Positions 2,484-10,697 of a stretch of DNA of 64,000 bases are shown in pieces. Under the pieces are notes generated by a model. The model saw only the letters and a program-made list of their open reading frames with translations. It was not told the DNA's origin and searched no databases. The stretch lies in the sequence record NC_070950.1. The stretch is one strand, 5' to 3'. Within the stretch, counting starts at the first letter, position 1. Each line of letters begins with the position of its first letter. A program made the translations under genes and the position numbers.

Positions 2484-2848
2484 ACAGAATAAGAAGTTTG
2501 GTTAGGGTCAGTGTCCCGGCAGACATCCCCTGGGCTTCTGATTCGAGGTTGTACCACGCCAGCGCACTTTTCTTTGAACGCTGGATTTACTATGGTGATT
2601 TCTCTCCTGAAGCTTACGACGAACTCTTTATCGATGTCGAATCTTTATTTGAGAAATTGCCGAAAAAAGATATCAATGAGATGTTCGATGAATGTTTGCT
2701 CTTAGTGGAAAACATTCGTAATGACGAAATTAACAGTGAAGTGAAAGATCTTATTGAGGGCAGTCGTTTTAAGGTATCGGTTGAGGGCACTAAGCTCATC
2801 AATTGGGATCATCAACGCTTTTTAATCTTAGTGGAAACTTTAACATGA
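2477..2848 (+). CDS. hypothetical protein (123 aa)
   Basis: Overlaps upstream ORF; its TGA overlaps the next ATG (ATGA at 2845). Confidence 0.65.
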   Translation: MVNRIRSLVRVSVPADIPWASDSRLYHASALFFERWIYYGDFSPEAYDELFIDVESLFEKLPKKDINEMFDECLLLVENIRNDEINSEVKDLIEGSRFKVSVEGTKLINWDHQRFLILVETLT

Positions 2849-3297
2849 GTAGAAAATCTATTGTACTGCGTCTTCCGGCTTCAACTGTTGCCGACCTTAA
2901 GGAATTCGACGAAGAAGCACAACTTCTTATTCTCACAGCATGCCTCTCACTCGCCAAACGACCCACTCAGGAACCCGTTAAGGAAGACGAAGACACCGAT
3001 CCTCGCTCCATCATCTCCAAAGAGGTCGATGATATTCTCGACACCATCGACGATAACTTCGAAGAGGCTGACGACGGCGACGAGGATGAGGAATCTTCTG
3101 AAAACCGTAAAGATGAGCAGCGCACAGTGATCCATCAGCAAATGGCAGACTTTATTGAAGAGTTTGTTGGGTTACTGGTTGATCCGGAAACTGAGAATTA
3201 TGGCGTTTTCAGCGCCATCGTTATGGACGATCTCAACACACCTATCAGCTGGGCTGCTGATGACAAAACTGGTCTGACCACGATTGTATACGGCTGA
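2845..3297 (+). CDS. hypothetical highly acidic protein (150 aa)
   Basis: Start reassigned from 2803 to the ATG at 2845 (ATGA coupling); acidic tract DDILDTIDDNFEEADDGDEDEE. Confidence 0.7.
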   Translation: MSRKSIVLRLPASTVADLKEFDEEAQLLILTACLSLAKRPTQEPVKEDEDTDPRSIISKEVDDILDTIDDNFEEADDGDEDEESSENRKDEQRTVIHQQMADFIEEFVGLLVDPETENYGVFSAIVMDDLNTPISWAADDKTGLTTIVYG

Positions 3298-3300
3298 CAG

Positions 3301-3333
3301 TAATCCTCCTACCCCAATGGGGTAGGAGGATTA
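3301..3333. terminator. bidirectional terminator-like palindrome
   Basis: Perfect 15-bp inverted repeat TAATCCTCCTACCCC-AAT-GGGGTAGGAGGATTA between convergent genes; T10 at 3343-3352. Confidence 0.8.
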
Positions 3334-3352
3334 GCAAGTCTATTTTTTTTTT

Positions 3353-4645
3353 CTAGAAAAGTGAATCGTAAAGATTAAGTACGGTTGTTTCTACTTTAGA
3401 AACGTGGGCGTTTTTCATCTTAGTTAACATAAACCGGGTTGGGATGTTAACAACTTCACTACTTAAACGGCTGGCTGATTTACCCAAAGAAACCCCGCAA
3501 CAAACCTTGCAGTGGTTATCTTCTTTTGTCTGACAGAGATAAGGAACGCGCATCTTAACCGTACTACCTATCATTTCGGTCTCAGTGCCTTCCAGAACGG
3601 TCGGTTTACCATTCTTAAGGTAATATCCCCCCTTCCAGTTCTTGAGGCTGTAAGGGTCGATATAGACGTCCTCTGTATAGGTTGTTCCGCAATCGTCTTC
3701 AGCTACAACGATTCGTGAGGTTAACCGCATCAGTTCTTTAACCCCTGCGCCACCTTCACCCGTTGCCTTACCACGGTCATAGGACGCGGAAACTGCGGTA
3801 TTGATGTAGTGGGTGATTTGGTCGTAATTCCAAATCTCATTAAGGGGTTGTTTTATCAGAATAAACTCACCCGTGTTAAAGTCCCTTTCCAGACCAAAGA
3901 CCAGGAACATTTTCTTACGGGCGTTATCGATAAATTTCTTATCAATGAAGAAATCAGAAGAAGCGCCGTTCAATTGCTCTTCCATGTCGAGGTCTACGAT
4001 CTGTTTGATGATGTTCGCTGCGACAATGGGGTCGTTTAACTCATGGGCGTGTTCTTTAAACAATCTCTCCCTTAGTGCAATGACCGCTTTACTTACGGTA
4101 ACCGCTTGGATGCTTCCGGCTTTAGTAAAGATGTCATTTAAACCCATCAGATAGTTGGCTTGTTTAGTAAGCTTAAGACACTCGGTCACGCTTGCTTTAC
4201 CAGCCGGTATCTCTTCGCCTGGCTGAGGGTCGTCTACCATTAATTCGGCGATGACGTCTTCAACTAATCTACCGGTTATGAGTTTATTGTGATACGGAGT
4301 CCGGTTTTGGAATACTTCCCAGAAAAGACATCTGTTAAGCAACAAGATCCCCATTGTGGTGGTAATGCTCCCCTCAATACTCGGGTGCCATTTATTATCT
4401 ATCACCAGCTTTTCGTGTTTATAGAAAAGAGGGTACGCGAGATCCCCTTCTATTTCTATCGTGTCCCCATCGTCGTTATAACACCAAAGTCCGTTGGGAC
4501 TGCGATGAAGGAGCCAGGGGGTTTTACCTAACAGAGTCTCGTTTTTTTCATTATCAGTAAGAACGGAGAAGGTGCTCAGTATCCAGAGTTTCTTTTGATA
4601 CATACGCCTTTCAAAACACTGGAAGAGATAATCGATCTTATTCAT
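3353..4645 (-). CDS. rpoC: DNA-directed RNA polymerase beta-prime subunit, middle fragment (virion RNAP, phiKZ gp80-like)
   Basis: beta-prime motifs EDDCGT and the Zn site RVPYLC...CKVCCG; GKATGEGGAGVKELMR resembles the bridge helix; only 430 aa, so a split subunit. Confidence 0.85.
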   Translation of the reverse strand: MNKIDYLFQCFERRMYQKKLWILSTFSVLTDNEKNETLLGKTPWLLHRSPNGLWCYNDDGDTIEIEGDLAYPLFYKHEKLVIDNKWHPSIEGSITTTMGILLLNRCLFWEVFQNRTPYHNKLITGRLVEDVIAELMVDDPQPGEEIPAGKASVTECLKLTKQANYLMGLNDIFTKAGSIQAVTVSKAVIALRERLFKEHAHELNDPIVAANIIKQIVDLDMEEQLNGASSDFFIDKKFIDNARKKMFLVFGLERDFNTGEFILIKQPLNEIWNYDQITHYINTAVSASYDRGKATGEGGAGVKELMRLTSRIVVAEDDCGTTYTEDVYIDPYSLKNWKGGYYLKNGKPTVLEGTETEMIGSTVKMRVPYLCQTKEDNHCKVCCGVSLGKSASRLSSEVVNIPTRFMLTKMKNAHVSKVETTVLNLYDSLF

Positions 4646-6290: not shown

Positions 6291-7907
6291 ATGTCTGAAG
6301 AAAACAACATTCCGGCCCAAGGGACGGCGCACGACAAGAACAACCACACGATGAGTCAGTTCCAGGAACCCAAAGATCTCAAGTTGGGGGTGTTCGATCC
6401 AAAAGAAGATAATAATTTCATTAAGGTCTTCTTAGGCGTTGACTCAGAAGAGTACAAGAAACTCTCTGGGCTTATCTCAAGATGGCTGGAGTACAACTTC
6501 GTCCTCAACGAACCCAATGCCAAACCGGCTCAGATTAACGCGGTTAAAGATAAATACTTCGGGTATCTTAAAGAACAGTACCCGAACAAAACAGAAGAAG
6601 AAGTTAACGAGCTGGCTCAGTCATACTACAGCTTCGCAACCAACTTCACTGAAAATCTGTACCGCCGGAACGAAACCGTTAATGGGGCTAAAACGACTAA
6701 CGTCTCTTTAAAAGCCCAGGGTATCGTCGAGGGAGACATCGTTGGTCGTGCGCCAGGGTTGGGTAAAAAGCTCCCTATGCGCGATATGATGCGCCGCCAT
6801 TTCCGTCGCACCACTAACGAAGCGGAAAACTTCGACGTTCTCCTGCGTAACTCATTTATTCAGTTACGTATTTCTCGCCCAACCATTCTGGAACTGGGGC
6901 GTCTGCTGGAAGACATTCAGCTCGAAGTGAAAAACTACGTTCGTCAGGTTAATGGTAACTCATTAACTCTCGCTCGTATTTCTATCGCTCGGGTTATTTG
7001 GAAATTCGTTTCTGATCGCATCGTATCCTGCTCCGTCAAAGATACCGACGATTATTACGATCTCGCTAACAACATCCTTTGGAGTGACTTTGGTGCGCTT
7101 TGCATCTCGTTACTTTCCGCATCGTCGTCTAAGGGTGTGAATTTCCAACTCGAGTGTCTTGCGAACAACTGCGACTGGGAAGAGTATCAGGTTATTGATC
7201 CTTCTCTCTTGCTTCGTCCTATTCCTGAGAATCTTTCAGAAGAGCAGTCTATCGCTCTGGGTAATATCGTTAACGGGGTTCAGCGTTATTCCCGTGAAGA
7301 GATTACCAAGCTTCAGAATAAGACCAAGTACGATTTCGATACCAAATTGATGTTCGACGAAGGCCGGCAGTATTTCGAAATCGCTCCTCCAACGCTGTCT
7401 GTTGCGTTTGAAACCTTCGACATGTTCGTCGATAAAGTCATCCCTTCGATTCAGCAATTGCGCGCTAACACCATCAACGATCAGGAGTATGCCGTTGCTC
7501 TGGCTAACCTCATCCAGAGTATCGCCGGTAGCGAATACGCCCATTGGGTTAAATCCTACGTGATTAACCCGGAGAGCGGCACAGACGGCGCACCTACTAA
7601 GTATGATCGTTTAGGTGAAGGTGGGTCTCGTGAGTTTAATGAAGGTCTCTTTGATATCCTCGATAGCGATGTTGAACTTTCCCAAGAACTCATCAAAAAG
7701 ATCAACCGTATCGGTCCATCGATGACACTCACCATCATCGGGGTGCCGAACTATCATTGCCCTCGTTGCGCGAAATCAAGTTCTGAAAGCGGTATCACTT
7801 ATAAAGGCATCACCCCTATCGATCCGCTTATGGCTTTTTTTACCCTAACCCAGTTGATGTTTATGGATCGGGTGGTGAATCTAAGCGGTCTCGACGCAAC
7901 CCCTTAG
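6291..7907 (+). CDS. Cys-motif protein, candidate baseplate-hub/tail assembly chaperone (538 aa)
   Basis: AGGA SD; motifs FQLECLANNC and HCPRC...PIDPLMAFF, reminiscent of T4 gp26/gp51-type assembly proteins (pattern only). Confidence 0.5.
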   Translation: MSEENNIPAQGTAHDKNNHTMSQFQEPKDLKLGVFDPKEDNNFIKVFLGVDSEEYKKLSGLISRWLEYNFVLNEPNAKPAQINAVKDKYFGYLKEQYPNKTEEEVNELAQSYYSFATNFTENLYRRNETVNGAKTTNVSLKAQGIVEGDIVGRAPGLGKKLPMRDMMRRHFRRTTNEAENFDVLLRNSFIQLRISRPTILELGRLLEDIQLEVKNYVRQVNGNSLTLARISIARVIWKFVSDRIVSCSVKDTDDYYDLANNILWSDFGALCISLLSASSSKGVNFQLECLANNCDWEEYQVIDPSLLLRPIPENLSEEQSIALGNIVNGVQRYSREEITKLQNKTKYDFDTKLMFDEGRQYFEIAPPTLSVAFETFDMFVDKVIPSIQQLRANTINDQEYAVALANLIQSIAGSEYAHWVKSYVINPESGTDGAPTKYDRLGEGGSREFNEGLFDILDSDVELSQELIKKINRIGPSMTLTIIGVPNYHCPRCAKSSSESGITYKGITPIDPLMAFFTLTQLMFMDRVVNLSGLDATP

Positions 7908-7925
7908 AGCTAACTACCTTTACTA

Positions 7926-7951
7926 ACTCGCCTGATTATCTGCAGGCGAGT
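7926..7951 (+). other. RNA hairpin immediately upstream of the 7955 start codon
   Basis: ACTCGCCTG-ATTATCTG-CAGGCGAGT, 9-bp perfect stem covering the weak RBS region. Confidence 0.55.
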
Positions 7952-7954
7952 AAA

Positions 7955-8344
7955 ATGTTCTTAGGGAAGTCTATTAAAACGATCACCCGCACAGAACTCA
8001 ACGTCATCGATAGCAAATTAAATCGTATCGGCATGGGGTATGTGGGGCTGAGTAAAATGACTCCCTTCGATCCTATCAGTTGGGTAGAGGAAGAGCATGA
8101 GTATACTCACCCGTTCAGTCTTCAACGTCGCTTTTACGACTACGGTTATTTCCGCCTAAAAGAAATCTTTACGTTAAACGAATACTTAAACATGGAAGCT
8201 TACCTTTTGGATAAGGCGATGAAGTACATTCGTTTAGGGGCCGATTCCAGATTAAAAGATGAAATCAGGCTCAATAAAGATAAAGCTGAGCCGGAAGCCA
8301 GTGAGGTCGAAAAAGTCATGAAAAACCTATTAGGTAAAGGATAG
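7955..8344 (+). CDS. hypothetical protein (129 aa), possible frameshift-extension domain of the upstream gene
   Basis: Weak SD; frame open back to 7805; motif FTLNEYLNM resembles the C-terminal module of tail-chaperone pairs. Confidence 0.6.
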   Translation: MFLGKSIKTITRTELNVIDSKLNRIGMGYVGLSKMTPFDPISWVEEEHEYTHPFSLQRRFYDYGYFRLKEIFTLNEYLNMEAYLLDKAMKYIRLGADSRLKDEIRLNKDKAEPEASEVEKVMKNLLGKG

Positions 8345-8349
8345 CGATT

Positions 8350-8931
8350 ATGTCTTATTCCAAACCTTCAAGTACTTCTATCACGCCAACCAATAAGGTG
8401 ATCGAAGAAACCGAAGAAGCCGTTCAGCAACAAATCACCTTAGAAAAAGAAAATGTCCCTACCGTCGTCCTTGCCAGTGAGATGGTAGGTTCTAAAAGCA
8501 ACGCAGTTACTGACGTTTTCGTAGAGGCCCTGACGCGCTATAAAAACGTATTAGCCGGTAACCTTGTTCTTAACAAATCCCAGCTCAAAGAAGAGCAGGC
8601 TGCGTTTATGAACACAGTGAGTAACACGATGAATCTTGAGTTTAAAGATTACGTGTTAACCACCGATGCGTTGGTTCTTTTAATGCGTGATAACAAAGAA
8701 GCCTTCAACGAAAAGCGTCTGTACGAACTGTTTTATTATGTTCAAGGCGACTATTCTAAGAAGGCGGCTGAACGTTACATGCGTTACATGTCGGCTCTGT
8801 ACACCCTGTCCCAAAACCTTCGTAACCGTTCTCGAATCGGTAAGATGGTGGACATTGTCAGTCTTTCCTCTGGCTATACAACTAAAGCTGCTACGAATAT
8901 CCAGAATTACTTCAACCGTAATTACGGTTAA
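8350..8931 (+). CDS. hypothetical protein (193 aa), possible virion protein
   Basis: AAGGA SD; clean ORF ending at a hairpin. Confidence 0.65.
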   Translation: MSYSKPSSTSITPTNKVIEETEEAVQQQITLEKENVPTVVLASEMVGSKSNAVTDVFVEALTRYKNVLAGNLVLNKSQLKEEQAAFMNTVSNTMNLEFKDYVLTTDALVLLMRDNKEAFNEKRLYELFYYVQGDYSKKAAERYMRYMSALYTLSQNLRNRSRIGKMVDIVSLSSGYTTKAATNIQNYFNRNYG

Positions 8932-8975: not shown

Positions 8976-10697
8976 TTATGCTACGAGTTTATTGTAAACT
9001 TTTTCGATCTCAGTAATGGTCGGGAATCTATGAAGTGTGGTACAGAGACTCAACGCATTTGCTTTAGGGCTGCTGGCGTAGTTGACTCCGACTTCCCTGA
9101 ATTGGAATCGGTTCAACCCTTCAATTTTACACGCTTCCATACGTGTTGTTTTATTTGATACGTTCAGCGCCACTGTCGCCGTAGGATAAGCACCAGTAAC
9201 GTCGATATCATCGGTCAAACCACGACCACGACTTCTGATACCCGGCATGCCGATAAAGAGCGCTTTACCCATGTCCTCGTTCTTTTCAGTCTCCAACAAC
9301 GCAATCCAATCTTTAAGATCTGGTTTAAGATCATCAAGTTCATCTTTGCTTGTCGTTCCGCGAGTACCCCAAACGTAACCGTTATCTTTAGCAACAAAAG
9401 ACAGTTCGTCGGAAATACATTTCGGCTGACTAGGATAGTTAAAGAATTCAGACGATTTCAAAAGCATAGGTAGCGAGAGACTTAAGTCATCCGTCTTTTC
9501 GTTAAGTTCTTCTATCGTGATGTTATCTTTGATGTTGTAAATGCAATATTCAAAGATATGATTCTTTTGCATATAACGGTGCCAGTCAGGTGAACCTGCT
9601 GGTAAGTGACTACCTGATTCGGTATAGAGTTTACCTTCTATCCCATTATCTTGAGCGGTGAATTCCAATCCGTAAGAATCCTTCTTACCCTGAGGAGCGC
9701 GTTTAATCGCATAGAAGGATGCGGCGTCCAACCATTGCCATGACGACATAGCTTGAACGGTAGGGAAACTTTCTTGCCACTCCAGAGGTTGTTTATCACC
9801 GTTCTCCTTGACCTTATGAGTTCTTCCTTTATTGAACCAATAATTTTGGAATTCCTCAGGAACATTCGGGTCGCTATAAACCGCAGCTGGATCAATGTTG
9901 TAAGCAAGTAATGCTTCCTCGTTCTTCTCCATATCGAACTTGGCGTTCCAAGACGCTATCCAATCTGGATGCCATTCATGCCAGCGCGCTACGTTACTTT
10001 CCACTACTTGAGCTTGGTTGTCAAAGAGCTCCCAAATCACAGTCGCGTTACGTCGTTTTAAAACATCTCCTAATAATCGCTCAGCTTCAGATTCTAAAGT
10101 CTCGATAATCTTCTTATCAGACATTCCATTAAAAATCCAACGAACTGCTGAGAAGTAAATCTTTTCTTTAAACGTAGTCGACGCCATAATGATAGAGTCA
10201 TCATTATTGTTGATCATGTTTGTTTCTACGTCATAAGCTGCCGTGGTATAAGACTCTGTCTCTTGGTATTTTGCCTGTGTCCTGAAATAGTAGTTCTTTA
10301 TGAGCACCGGAGTGGTTTGCTCACAACCGTAGACATATGGAGAGTTCTTCATAGTCAGCAGGTCGGCTTTTTTATCAGGTACCCCGTAGAGGATTCGGCT
10401 GATATTCATCGCCATACGAGCACGTGTGCTTTTAAAACTATCGCATAATCGTTTGTCGATGTAGTCTTTCTTATCTTTAAACTTACGGAATTTTTCTTTC
10501 GTGATATAAAAGTCGACAACGAGATCGGGAATACCTATCAGCGAATCAGATCGAGACCCATCTTCATGGACATTGGTTATTTTAACCAGGTTATAGTCTT
10601 TTAATTTGTCGTACCGTGATGTGCTGTATGCAACTTTTTTACAAACTTTTCCAATGATGGGAGAGTCATTTTTTTCTCCCGATCCTAGTGTAATCAT
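8976..10697 (-). CDS. split family-B DNA polymerase subunit (3'-5' exonuclease plus palm motif A), phiKZ gp82-like
   Basis: ExoI AYDVET, ExoII WNAKFD, ExoIII YNIKD, Pol motif A DIDVTGAYPT near the C-terminus; motifs B and C absent. Confidence 0.8.
   Translation of the reverse strand: MITLGSGEKNDSPIIGKVCKKVAYSTSRYDKLKDYNLVKITNVHEDGSRSDSLIGIPDLVVDFYITKEKFRKFKDKKDYIDKRLCDSFKSTRARMAMNISRILYGVPDKKADLLTMKNSPYVYGCEQTTPVLIKNYYFRTQAKYQETESYTTAAYDVETNMINNNDDSIIMASTTFKEKIYFSAVRWIFNGMSDKKIIETLESEAERLLGDVLKRRNATVIWELFDNQAQVVESNVARWHEWHPDWIASWNAKFDMEKNEEALLAYNIDPAAVYSDPNVPEEFQNYWFNKGRTHKVKENGDKQPLEWQESFPTVQAMSSWQWLDAASFYAIKRAPQGKKDSYGLEFTAQDNGIEGKLYTESGSHLPAGSPDWHRYMQKNHIFEYCIYNIKDNITIEELNEKTDDLSLSLPMLLKSSEFFNYPSQPKCISDELSFVAKDNGYVWGTRGTTSKDELDDLKPDLKDWIALLETEKNEDMGKALFIGMPGIRSRGRGLTDDIDVTGAYPTATVALNVSNKTTRMEACKIEGLNRFQFREVGVNYASSPKANALSLCTTLHRFPTITEIEKVYNKLVA

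Follow-up and report, generated by a model that had tools for sequence, protein, structure and literature searches.

The window analyzed here, a stretch of 64,000 nucleotides from sequence record NC_070950.1, includes two consecutive genes of Klebsiella phage Miami that are referred to below as gene A and ORF B. The relevant features of this locus are as follows.

6291..7907, + strand: gene A (CPT_Miami_009), with a 0-frame product of 538 aa; phrog_4585, E 1e-110
7835..7841, + strand: slippery heptamer T_TTT_TTT, phased with gene A (GCT TTT TTT) and spanning the conserved Phe516-Phe517
7805..8344, + strand: -1-frame ORF, stop to stop, 179 codons plus stop
7841..8341, + strand: stretch that would be read after a shift, 167 codons
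7842..7907, + strand: zone of two-frame overlap; its 0 frame holds the 21-residue C-terminal tail of the short product and the stop
7908..7954, + strand: so-called intergenic spacer, open and conserved at the protein level in the -1 frame only
7926..7951, + strand: 9-bp hairpin (loop of 8 nt) in which the weak SD of ATG 7955 is sequestered
7955..8344, + strand: annotated ORF B (CPT_Miami_010), 129 aa, phrog_19747; its ATG is not conserved in relatives

Codons of gene A start at positions divisible by 3, and positions 7830-7844 read ATG GCT TTT TTT ACC. With respect to this frame, the seven T's at 7835-7841 do constitute an in-phase X_XXY_YYZ heptamer of the gene at 6291..7907, as had been proposed in an earlier note made from the Miami sequence alone, and the placement by that note of ORF 7955..8344 in the -1 frame of gene A is likewise borne out. 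Specifically, the -1 frame is closed by a TAA at 7802-7804, located 10 codons before the heptamer, and its next stop occurs only at 8342-8344; none of the 38 codons that separate the two Phe codons from ATG 7955 is a -1 stop. The product sizes that had been predicted from this arrangement, 538 aa and 684 aa (517 + 167), are also right. In terms of the Miami genome alone, this evidence is merely suggestive, as the arrangement is about what chance might give once. The window contains 80 ORFs of 100 aa or more, 20 of which possess a -1-frame ORF that crosses their stop and then continues for at least 100 codons, a frequency attributable to the tight packing of the genes, and six T7 runs are present in the 64 kb. 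Of those ORFs, gene 6291 is the sole one whose overlap additionally contains a slippery heptamer in phase.

On the basis of homology, gene A is identified as core gene cg18 of the Chimalliviridae (the phiKZ gp77 family), an entry in the core-gene table in the supplement of PMC10299810. Its homologs include phiKZ gp77, PhiPA3 gp074, 201phi2-1 gp136, EL gp47, Goslar gp081 and RAY gp267. The Miami gene is connected by tblastn to EL gp47 and PhiPA3 gp074, the PhiPA3 annotation notes name phiKZ gp077, and a search with PhiPA3 gp074 matches 224 phage records; the gene is carried by roughly 300 phage records in all. Gene A homologs adjoin gp78- and gp79-like genes, and the neighbors encode a helicase, a DNA polymerase and RNA polymerase subunits, which is an early, replication/transcription setting. 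A homolog, Churi gp256, has been detected by mass spectrometry at 15 min and is listed as non-structural (PMC11849849). The proteomic search databases of that study did not contain the -1 ORF, and only the homolog of the 0-frame product is on record in proteomics. Four Cys residues (C289, C294, C490 and C493) are conserved in the gene A protein and likely form a putative Cys4 metal site. Beyond this, Pfam, PHROGs and PDB-sequence searches with both parts of the locus, alone and as family alignments, gave no usable function match, and the labels carried by some records (‘ZipA-like cell division protein’, ‘putative baseplate protein’ and ‘baseplate hub assembly protein’) are unsupported by searches of the same kinds. 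Two protein-database searches for a deeper alignment of gene A returned the same five relatives; the structure model of its product, built on six sequences, was poor (pLDDT 49), and no fold search was made from it.

The arrangement at the Miami locus was compared with 68 related loci, comprising 29 named and annotated phages, 36 IMG/VR loci and 3 Logan contigs (metagenomic relatives of Miami). Of these, 65 were grouped into 21 lineages at below 50% identity, which cover phiKZ-type, 201phi2-1, PhiPA3, EL, OBP, Goslar, RAY, RSL2 and SPN3US-like phages as well as Vibrio phages. The lineages share descent, and the P values given below assume independent synonymous sites, which is reasonable at below 50% protein identity and not exact. 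The downstream ORF was found in the -1 frame of gene A in all 68 loci, including 29/29 annotated phages and 3/3 metagenomic Miami relatives. Past the stop of gene A, the sole long ORF is that of the -1 frame in 21/21 lineages (167-234 codons, versus 0-98 in the other two frames). In 68/68 loci this frame is open from a point 1-63 codons (mostly 4-23) before the T-run to the end of ORF B, and the relation between the two frames persists through many indels, all multiples of 3, over the 21 deep lineages. The earlier note had named homologs without the T-run, or with -1 stops between the genes, as the finding that would refute a shift; this situation was never met in the 68 loci.

Homopolymer runs are error-prone on several sequencing platforms (general knowledge), and a miscounted run could in principle split one long ORF into two. 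Such an artefact is very hard to reconcile with the occurrence of the same arrangement in 68 independently sequenced loci that include Sanger-era genomes (EL, 201phi2-1) as well as recent assemblies and metagenomes, or with the variation in T-run length among them. Moreover, the 0-frame tail that follows the run is itself conserved as far as its stop, with regard to both sequence and length (mostly 23-26 codons). We regard the chance of a sequencing error as negligible.

With respect to the heptamer, a perfect T_TTT_TTN is present in 27/29 named phages, 35/36 IMG/VR loci and 3/3 Logan contigs, and the three imperfect loci retain T_TTY with a G or C at heptamer position 1. Counted by lineage, the heptamer is perfect in 18/21, and a T_TTY or T_TTA tetramer is found in 21/21. 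The first Phe codon is TTT in every one of the 21 lineages (the product of background shares is 10^-15.1), and in most of these gene A homologs TTT is the less common of the two Phe codons. The wobble base of the codon preceding the Phe pair is T in 18/21 lineages (P = 1.8e-8), and this codon encodes nine different residues across them. In Kc263 the second codon is TTA, for Leu, such that the T-run has outlived a change of amino acid. The conservation of the T-run exceeds what would be needed to encode the conserved Phe-Phe dipeptide, and the synonymous positions of the heptamer are under strong selection. Downstream of the heptamer, the increase in synonymous-site conservation is only marginal at this depth of divergence (0.40 versus 0.35). 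Taken together, the comparison with relatives lifts the Miami arrangement far above chance, and we grade this comparative evidence, which rests on sequence alone, as decisive.

The same 684-aa protein could also arise by transcriptional slippage, in which host or phage RNA polymerase would stutter on the A7 template and add one U, followed by normal translation. Homopolymer runs are a known substrate for slippage of this type, and phiKZ-like phages use their own unusual multisubunit RNA polymerases, the fidelity of which on such runs is not established. A transcriptional slippage run is typically 8-9 residues or more, with length rather than phase conserved. In E. coli genes the UUUUUUU sequence is rarer than expected in every frame, possibly on account of polymerase slippage (PMC4066793). 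The runs in this family are, however, just 5-7 T's long: approximately one-third of the lineages have 6 (T_TTT_TTC or T_TTT_TTA), Noxifer has 5 (G_TTT_TTC), and no lineage has been extended to 8 or more, while known transcriptional slippage sites are longer than this (PMC5009743; also general knowledge). In addition, position 1 of the heptamer is selected and position 7 varies freely (T, C or A), a pattern that fits the rules of tRNA re-pairing and not those of maximal run length. We consider slippage by the polymerase unlikely, without setting it aside altogether.

In contrast to the heptamer, the start codon of the downstream ORF is not conserved, and Phikzvirus Churi and RAY lack a usable one. 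The first ATG lies 26 to 87 codons past the heptamer across lineages, none is found within 100 codons in RAY, and candidate starts mostly lack an SD. Annotated starts of ORF B fall 8 to 125 nt after the stop of gene A in 27 phages. In Phikzvirus Churi this gap is 323 nt and the annotation covers just the last 46 of 171 -1-frame codons, and in RAY the annotated start is 136 nt inside gene A. In phiKZ-type phages, about 90 codons separate the T-run from the first possible start codon, and a stretch of roughly 320 nt following gp77 carries no annotation. The codon corresponding to ATG 7955 of Miami encodes Pro or Ser in the relatives that are 70% and 45% identical, in which the -1-frame residues on both sides of it are conserved. 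Between Miami and the 70% relative, the spacer at 7908-7954 differs at codon positions 1, 2 and 3 in 6, 4 and 10 cases, respectively, and its identity is 9/16 residues in the -1 frame versus 4/15 and 2/15 in the other, stop-containing frames. By these measures the spacer behaves as -1-frame coding sequence.

A structural prediction points in the same direction. In the AlphaFold model of the -1-frame read (pLDDT 75), residues 1-26 are disordered and confident helices are present from residue 23 on, upstream of the annotated ATG (residue 41), and this model places the beginning of the folded C-terminal domain within the spacer 7908..7954. ORF B is interpreted as the rest of the all-helical C-terminal domain of the long product. 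Over 7842..7907, the 0-frame 21-residue tail is predicted with low confidence to be helical, and in the -1 frame the same stretch encodes the beginning of a polar linker for which disorder is predicted. Foldseek searches of the -1-frame model against PDB and BFVD matched only its own family. No in-frame A+B fusion was found among 1.84 billion representatives or the five relatives; one 765-aa candidate match was disregarded as weak and multi-stretch. An in-frame fusion, had there been one, would have proved independently that the joined protein is functional.

These data bear directly on the possibility that no recoding occurs, in which case A and B would be ordinary genes, with B translated from its own start (ATG 7955 in Miami) and with the frame relation and T-run as inherited accidents. 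Two genes are annotated in all 29 GenBank records inspected, -1 arrangements across a stop are common in the Miami window, and the SD of ATG 7955 is no worse than that of gene A, the anti-SD pairing of both starts being -3.9 kcal/mol. Owing to this equivalence, some independent synthesis of the 129-aa piece from ATG 7955 in Miami cannot be excluded. The 9-bp hairpin that the earlier note had described around this weak SD (7926-7934 pairing with 7943-7951) is real, with a stability of -16.5 kcal/mol in context, and may disfavor internal initiation; at 85 nt from the heptamer, it is too far away for a classical frameshift stimulator. As an account of the family, two ordinary genes would nonetheless have to accommodate a start of B that is conserved in neither position nor existence, a conserved and confidently folded part of the domain that begins upstream of the annotated starts, a frame relation kept through indels that are all multiples of 3 in 21 deep lineages, and strong selection on synonymous heptamer positions. 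We find this very improbable.

We favor programmed -1 ribosomal frameshifting on T_TTT_TTT as the source of a 538-aa and a 684-aa product, and assign this reading a probability of roughly 0.84, although direct evidence from proteins, ribosome profiling or transcripts is absent. What has been observed is the signal, the open frame, the conservation of both throughout the family and the absence of a conserved start for the downstream ORF. According to the proposed mechanism, the majority of ribosomes on gene A would traverse 7835-7841 in the 0 frame and stop at 7905-7907, to give the 538-aa protein with its short tail. A fraction would slip back by one base while two tRNA-Phe occupy TTT TTT, re-pair with TTT TTT in the -1 frame, and read on from 7841 to 8341, such that the resulting 684-aa protein would have its first 517 residues in common with the short isoform. 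Following residue 517, the long form would carry a polar linker of ~25 residues, predicted to be disordered, and then an all-helical domain of ~140 residues, which is what annotators have recorded as the separate gene CPT_Miami_010. Judged from length, the masses of the short and long isoforms would be roughly 61 and 78 kDa, respectively, and their ratio would depend on the slip rate. The ribosomal nature of the slip, the rate at which it occurs and the roles of the two isoforms are inferred.

In terms of efficiency, U_UU.U_UU.Y falls in the class H_HH.U_UU.Y, which is efficient in E. coli, and among tetramers U_UU.C and U_UU.U rank second and third in their tendency to shift (PMC4066793). In E. 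coli test constructs, the all-U heptamer was much less shift-prone than the best A-rich motif (PMC5009743), and such motifs shift at only >0.1% without a stimulator (PMC4066793); given these two results, the long form may be rare. A search for a downstream stimulator 5-9 nt after the heptamer found no conserved stem-loop or pseudoknot in 60 or 90 nt (z about 0), and no upstream SD-like stimulator was found 4-22 nt before it (mean -0.4 versus a background of -2.1 kcal/mol). Hairpins near or after the stop of gene A are strong in Miami, PS1, PhiPA3 and Noxifer and are not general (mean z -0.6). Since no stimulatory element was detected, the 684-aa form is inferred to be the minor isoform. A stimulatory element is a common and not an obligatory feature of programmed -1 frameshift sites, and the lack of a ribosomal stimulator is neutral toward transcriptional slippage.

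A more far-reaching form of the frameshifting model can be put forward only tentatively, and we hold it to be doubtful: the shift would be ancient, family-wide and obligatory, would express a hidden, start-less core domain without a canonical cis stimulator, and would have its rate set in trans. If this were true, the absence of a canonical cis stimulator would leave the slip rate to be set in trans, and the short-to-long ratio could consequently change during infection. Possible causes would include phage-modified ribosomes, the supply of tRNA-Phe and the nascent chain. These phages are known to encode ribosome-binding proteins (PMC11849849).

The earlier note knew of no description of such a shift for phiKZ-like phages, and this agrees with the GenBank records and the searchable literature. 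None of the 29 GenBank records inspected annotates an A/B join, and the shift is not mentioned in the full-text literature searched, including a 2016 recoding review, a 2023 core-genome paper and a 2025 review of nucleus-forming phages. Intensive study is devoted to the Chimalliviridae (phiKZ-like, nucleus-forming jumbo phages), whose 68-72 core genes serve as the list for the ongoing assignment of functions. If the shift is genuine, core gene cg18 (phiKZ gp77, with no assigned function) yields two proteins and not one, and a domain of ~140 residues that is now annotated inconsistently as a separate small gene, or left unannotated in phiKZ-type genomes, is a conserved C-terminal extension of the cg18 protein. 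As such, it would be missing from proteomic databases, knock-down designs and core-genome tables. The locus would also place a programmed frameshift of a tailed phage in an early, non-structural gene, where to our knowledge nearly all known phage programmed frameshifts belong to tail chaperones, and would be a natural case of a bare U-rich heptamer that is deeply conserved in evolution without a recognizable stimulator.

With respect to known systems, the parallel that the earlier note drew with tail assembly chaperones holds for the mechanism and fails for the kind of gene, as gene A is an early, non-structural core gene. In phage P2, E/E+E' is a -1 frameshift of the tail assembly chaperone type. 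The corresponding lambda G/GT frameshift is described in PMC5009743. As in both of these systems, a -1 shift near the 3′ end of a phage gene would generate a minor, C-terminally extended fusion with the next ORF, that ORF has no independent role as a start-bearing gene, and the position of the shift is conserved across distant phages. Unlike tail chaperones, gene A has no Pfam, PHROG-function or PDB-sequence likeness to a chaperone or tail protein, and its -1-frame model has no fold match. At 538 aa, its product is longer than the approximately 100-150 aa of such chaperones, and the gene is surrounded by helicase and polymerase genes instead of being flanked by those for the tail tube and the tape measure. 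Its homolog is on the list of non-structural proteins that are expressed at 15 min.

A further likeness is to transposases of the IS3/IS1 type (orfA/orfAB), in which a start-less downstream -1 ORF is joined by a heptamer slip to give a fusion protein; U_UU.U_UU.C is among the heptamers employed by IS elements, and the product ratio is the point of the device (PMC4066793). IS sites usually have a downstream stem-loop or pseudoknot, and often an upstream SD-like element, whereas neither was found for the site in gene A, and this gene shows no transposase homology and is a core gene of a lytic phage family. In the case of bacterial dnaX, the shift truncates the protein, and its high efficiency derives from an SD-like element plus a hairpin. 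The shift in gene A would instead extend the protein, with no stimulator seen and no sequence likeness to DnaX. The two systems nevertheless resemble each other in that one gene, through a -1 slip, would provide two isoforms (tau and gamma in the case of dnaX) that share an N-terminal body in a replication-associated context (PMC5009743).

At 100% identity, the window corresponds to positions 1-64000 of the 253-kb genome of Klebsiella phage Miami (MT701590.1), a member of the genus Miamivirus, and the two adjacent genes of concern are the following:

6291..7907, + strand: gene A, CPT_Miami_009, 538 aa, annotated 'hypothetical protein'
7955..8344, + strand: ORF B, CPT_Miami_010, 129 aa, annotated 'hypothetical protein'

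The earlier note had proposed that a programmed -1 frameshift fuses these two genes, and the sequence features on which it relied were all borne out. Specifically, the gene A frame reads ATG GCT TTT TTT ACC, and its run of seven T's (7835-7841) is thereby an X_XXY_YYZ heptamer in phase with the gene. ORF B lies in the -1 frame relative to gene A, stop codons in this frame occur at 7802-7804 and 8342-8344 with none between, and a slip on the heptamer would yield a product of 517 + 167 = 684 residues. A 9-bp hairpin (7926-7951) over the weak SD of ATG 7955 is likewise present. With respect to the window as a whole, 20 of its 80 ORFs that encode 100 aa or more are accompanied by a -1 ORF that crosses their own stop and runs for at least 100 codons, which is frequent here because gene packing is tight; among these 20, only the gene at 6291 carries an in-phase slippery heptamer within the overlap. 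Exact T7 runs occur six times in the 64 kb, and A7 runs and runs of eight do not occur. Taken alone, the arrangement in the Miami genome is not striking and is insufficient to accept the frameshift reading.

Homologs of gene A were found in 73 phage records with the Miami query and, via PhiPA3 gp074, in 224 records spanning the entire family of nucleus-forming jumbo phages. Annotation notes for PhiPA3 and 201phi2-1 give phiKZ gp77 and EL gp47 as its equivalents, and in the supplement of the core-genome paper it appears as core gene cg18 (Goslar gp081, phiKZ gp077, RAY gp267; 'hypothetical protein'; PMC10299810). Pfam and PDB searches with gene A returned no relative, and the labels 'ZipA-like cell division protein', 'putative baseplate protein' and 'baseplate hub assembly protein' carried by some homologs were unsupported by Pfam, PHROG or PDB searches. 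Gene A contains four cysteines (C289, C294, C490 and C493; codons at 7155-7172 and 7758-7769), three of them invariant and one nearly so across 23 diverse homologs, and these two pairs, some 200 residues apart, suggest a putative structural metal site linking two parts of the protein. The homolog in phage Churi is in the list of non-structural proteins and is expressed at 15 min (PMC11849849), and genes for a helicase, a DNA polymerase and an RNA polymerase subunit lie nearby. Nearby CPT_Miami_012 (8976-10697, - strand), annotated 'ribonuclease', matches the DNA polymerase PHROG phrog_3011 over its full length (E 9e-206), and the RisingSun counterpart carries the label 'putative DNA polymerase'. 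A record labeled 'Stenotrophomonas phage BUCTxx100' (OR529409.1), an unexpected host, is 99.1% identical to Miami over 6291-8931.

The earlier note had offered conservation of the T-run and of the open -1 frame in homologous gene pairs as a check, and both proved to be present at every locus compared. These comprised 29 annotated phage loci, 36 IMG/VR loci (7 duplicating named phages) and three metagenomic Logan contigs that are Miami's nearest relatives (70, 50 and 45% identity); clustering of 65 loci on gene A identity gave 21 lineages sharing <50% identity. The ORF after gene A, as placed by independent annotators, is in the -1 frame in 29 of 29 annotated phages, and the same holds for all three contigs. 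Moreover, in all 21 lineages the -1 frame supplies the sole long ORF beyond the gene A stop (167-234 codons, versus 0-98 in the other two frames). At every locus this frame is already open at the T-run, which lies on a conserved Phe-Phe 10-39 codons (mostly 23-26) before the gene A stop.

The heptamer is T_TTT_TTT, T_TTT_TTC or T_TTT_TTA in 27/29 named phages, 35/36 IMG/VR loci and 3/3 contigs, with position 7 thus unconstrained (T, C or A); the exceptions have G (PhiPA3 and Noxifer) or C (one metagenomic locus) at position 1. Selection of the IMG/VR loci relied on a peptide pattern containing Phe-Phe, and these loci therefore inform on codon choice only and not on the dipeptide. All 21 lineages use TTT for the first Phe (product of background shares, 10^-15.1), in genes most of which use TTC more commonly than TTT. 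The codon before it ends in T in 18 of 21 lineages, versus a mean T3 of 0.27 (P = 1.8e-8), and encodes nine different residues among them. In Kc263, the second Phe codon is replaced by Leu TTA with the T-run retained. These probabilities assume that synonymous sites evolve independently in the different lineages, a fair if inexact approximation at such divergence. Judged by sequence comparison, the T-run is conserved beyond what the dipeptide would require, in a pattern that matches the requirements of tRNA re-pairing in the -1 frame.

The most economical explanation is that some ribosomes change frame at the two Phe codons: they would slip back by one nucleotide and continue into the start-less -1 ORF to give a fusion. 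In E. coli, heptamers of the H_HH.U_UU.Y class belong to those that shift efficiently, insertion sequences make use of U_UU.U_UU.C, and the tetramers U_UU.C and U_UU.U rank second and third best (PMC4066793), so that the three lineages whose position 1 is G or C would also be covered. The main rival is transcriptional slippage at the T-run. Selection falls on heptamer position 1 rather than on run length, the runs are merely 5-7 T's and no lineage has lengthened one, and we regard this alternative as quite improbable, though the unusual phage RNA polymerases keep it in play. In terms of stimulators of ribosomal frameshifting, we found neither conserved RNA structure within the first 60-90 nt 3′ of the heptamer nor an SD-like element 5′ of it, and we therefore infer that the slip rate would be low and the long isoform minor. 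The best A-rich motif far outperforms the all-U heptamer (PMC5009743).

Comparison of the loci indicates that ORF B has no conserved start of its own. Annotated starts fall 8 to 125 nt past the gene A stop in 27 phages, the first -1-frame ATG lies 26-87 codons past the heptamer (in RAY, 100 codons pass without one), and few candidate starts have an SD. In Pseudomonas phage Churi (Phikzvirus), only the last 46 of 171 codons of the -1 ORF are annotated; the 323-nt 'intergenic' gap after its phiKZ gp77 homolog (3103-3425 of fetched locus L023) has no -1-frame stop and shows homology to ORF B of other phages. The PhiPA3 annotation notes give no phiKZ homolog of PhiPA3 ORF B. Erwinia phage RAY gp266 (2736-3284 of locus L025) has its annotated start 136 nt within gene A, 5′ of the T-run, apparently because the -1 frame lacks an ATG for >100 codons past it, and this start looks like a gene-caller artefact.

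Among Miami's nearest relatives, the one at 70% identity has a Pro codon and the one at 45% a Ser codon in place of the ORF B ATG, with the flanking -1-frame residues conserved. Across the 16-codon spacer, comparison of Miami with the 70% relative shows 6, 4 and 10 differences at the first, second and third codon positions of the -1 frame, and the two share 9/16 residues in this frame, versus 4/15 and 2/15 in the other two, both of which contain stops. Some independent initiation at ATG 7955 cannot be excluded in Miami, where the SD (-3.9 kcal/mol) equals that of gene A and is buried in the hairpin. Strong hairpins 10-50 nt past the gene A stop were seen in Miami (z = -3), PS1, PhiPA3 and Noxifer, and two Miami relatives have hairpins of different sequence at a similar place (window 7926-7951 and loci L067, L068, L017, L020 and L021). 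The feature is not family-wide (mean z -0.6) and may block internal initiation. Separately, Vibrio and Photobacterium phages (loci L003-L007) have a short GC-rich hairpin with the gene A stop codon in its loop, and the stem differences among PDCC-1, phiKT1028 and pTD1 may represent covariation.

As for the products, conservation extends to the 0-frame tail 3′ of the shift site, for which a helix is predicted with low confidence. The -1 continuation starts with a polar linker (G/S/P/N/D/E/K/R/Q/T make up 57-80% of its first 30 residues). AlphaFold modeling of the -1-frame read (37 sequences, pLDDT 75) leaves residues 1-26 disordered; helices modeled with confidence start at residue 23, ahead of the annotated Met (residue 41), and belong to an all-helical domain after the linker for which Foldseek found no fold relatives in PDB or BFVD beyond its own family. 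With a helical tail in one frame and a linker plus all-helical domain in the other, the shift would replace a short helix with an additional, tethered domain.

A join annotation across gene A and ORF B was absent from all 29 inspected records (of ~300). The frameshift is not mentioned in a comprehensive 2016 recoding review (PMC5009743) or a 2025 review of nucleus-forming phages, and the suggestion that it is undescribed in phiKZ-like phages stands as far as the searchable literature goes, subscription-only papers excluded. The parallel drawn previously with tail assembly chaperones holds for working mode: there, as in insertion-sequence frameshifts, an upstream ORF and a start-less -1 ORF give a fusion. 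It does not extend to family membership, as gene A lacks homology to either group and its genomic context and size are wrong. The frameshift proposed here would add a further case of a familiar mechanism, in a gene family that is prominent and new to it.
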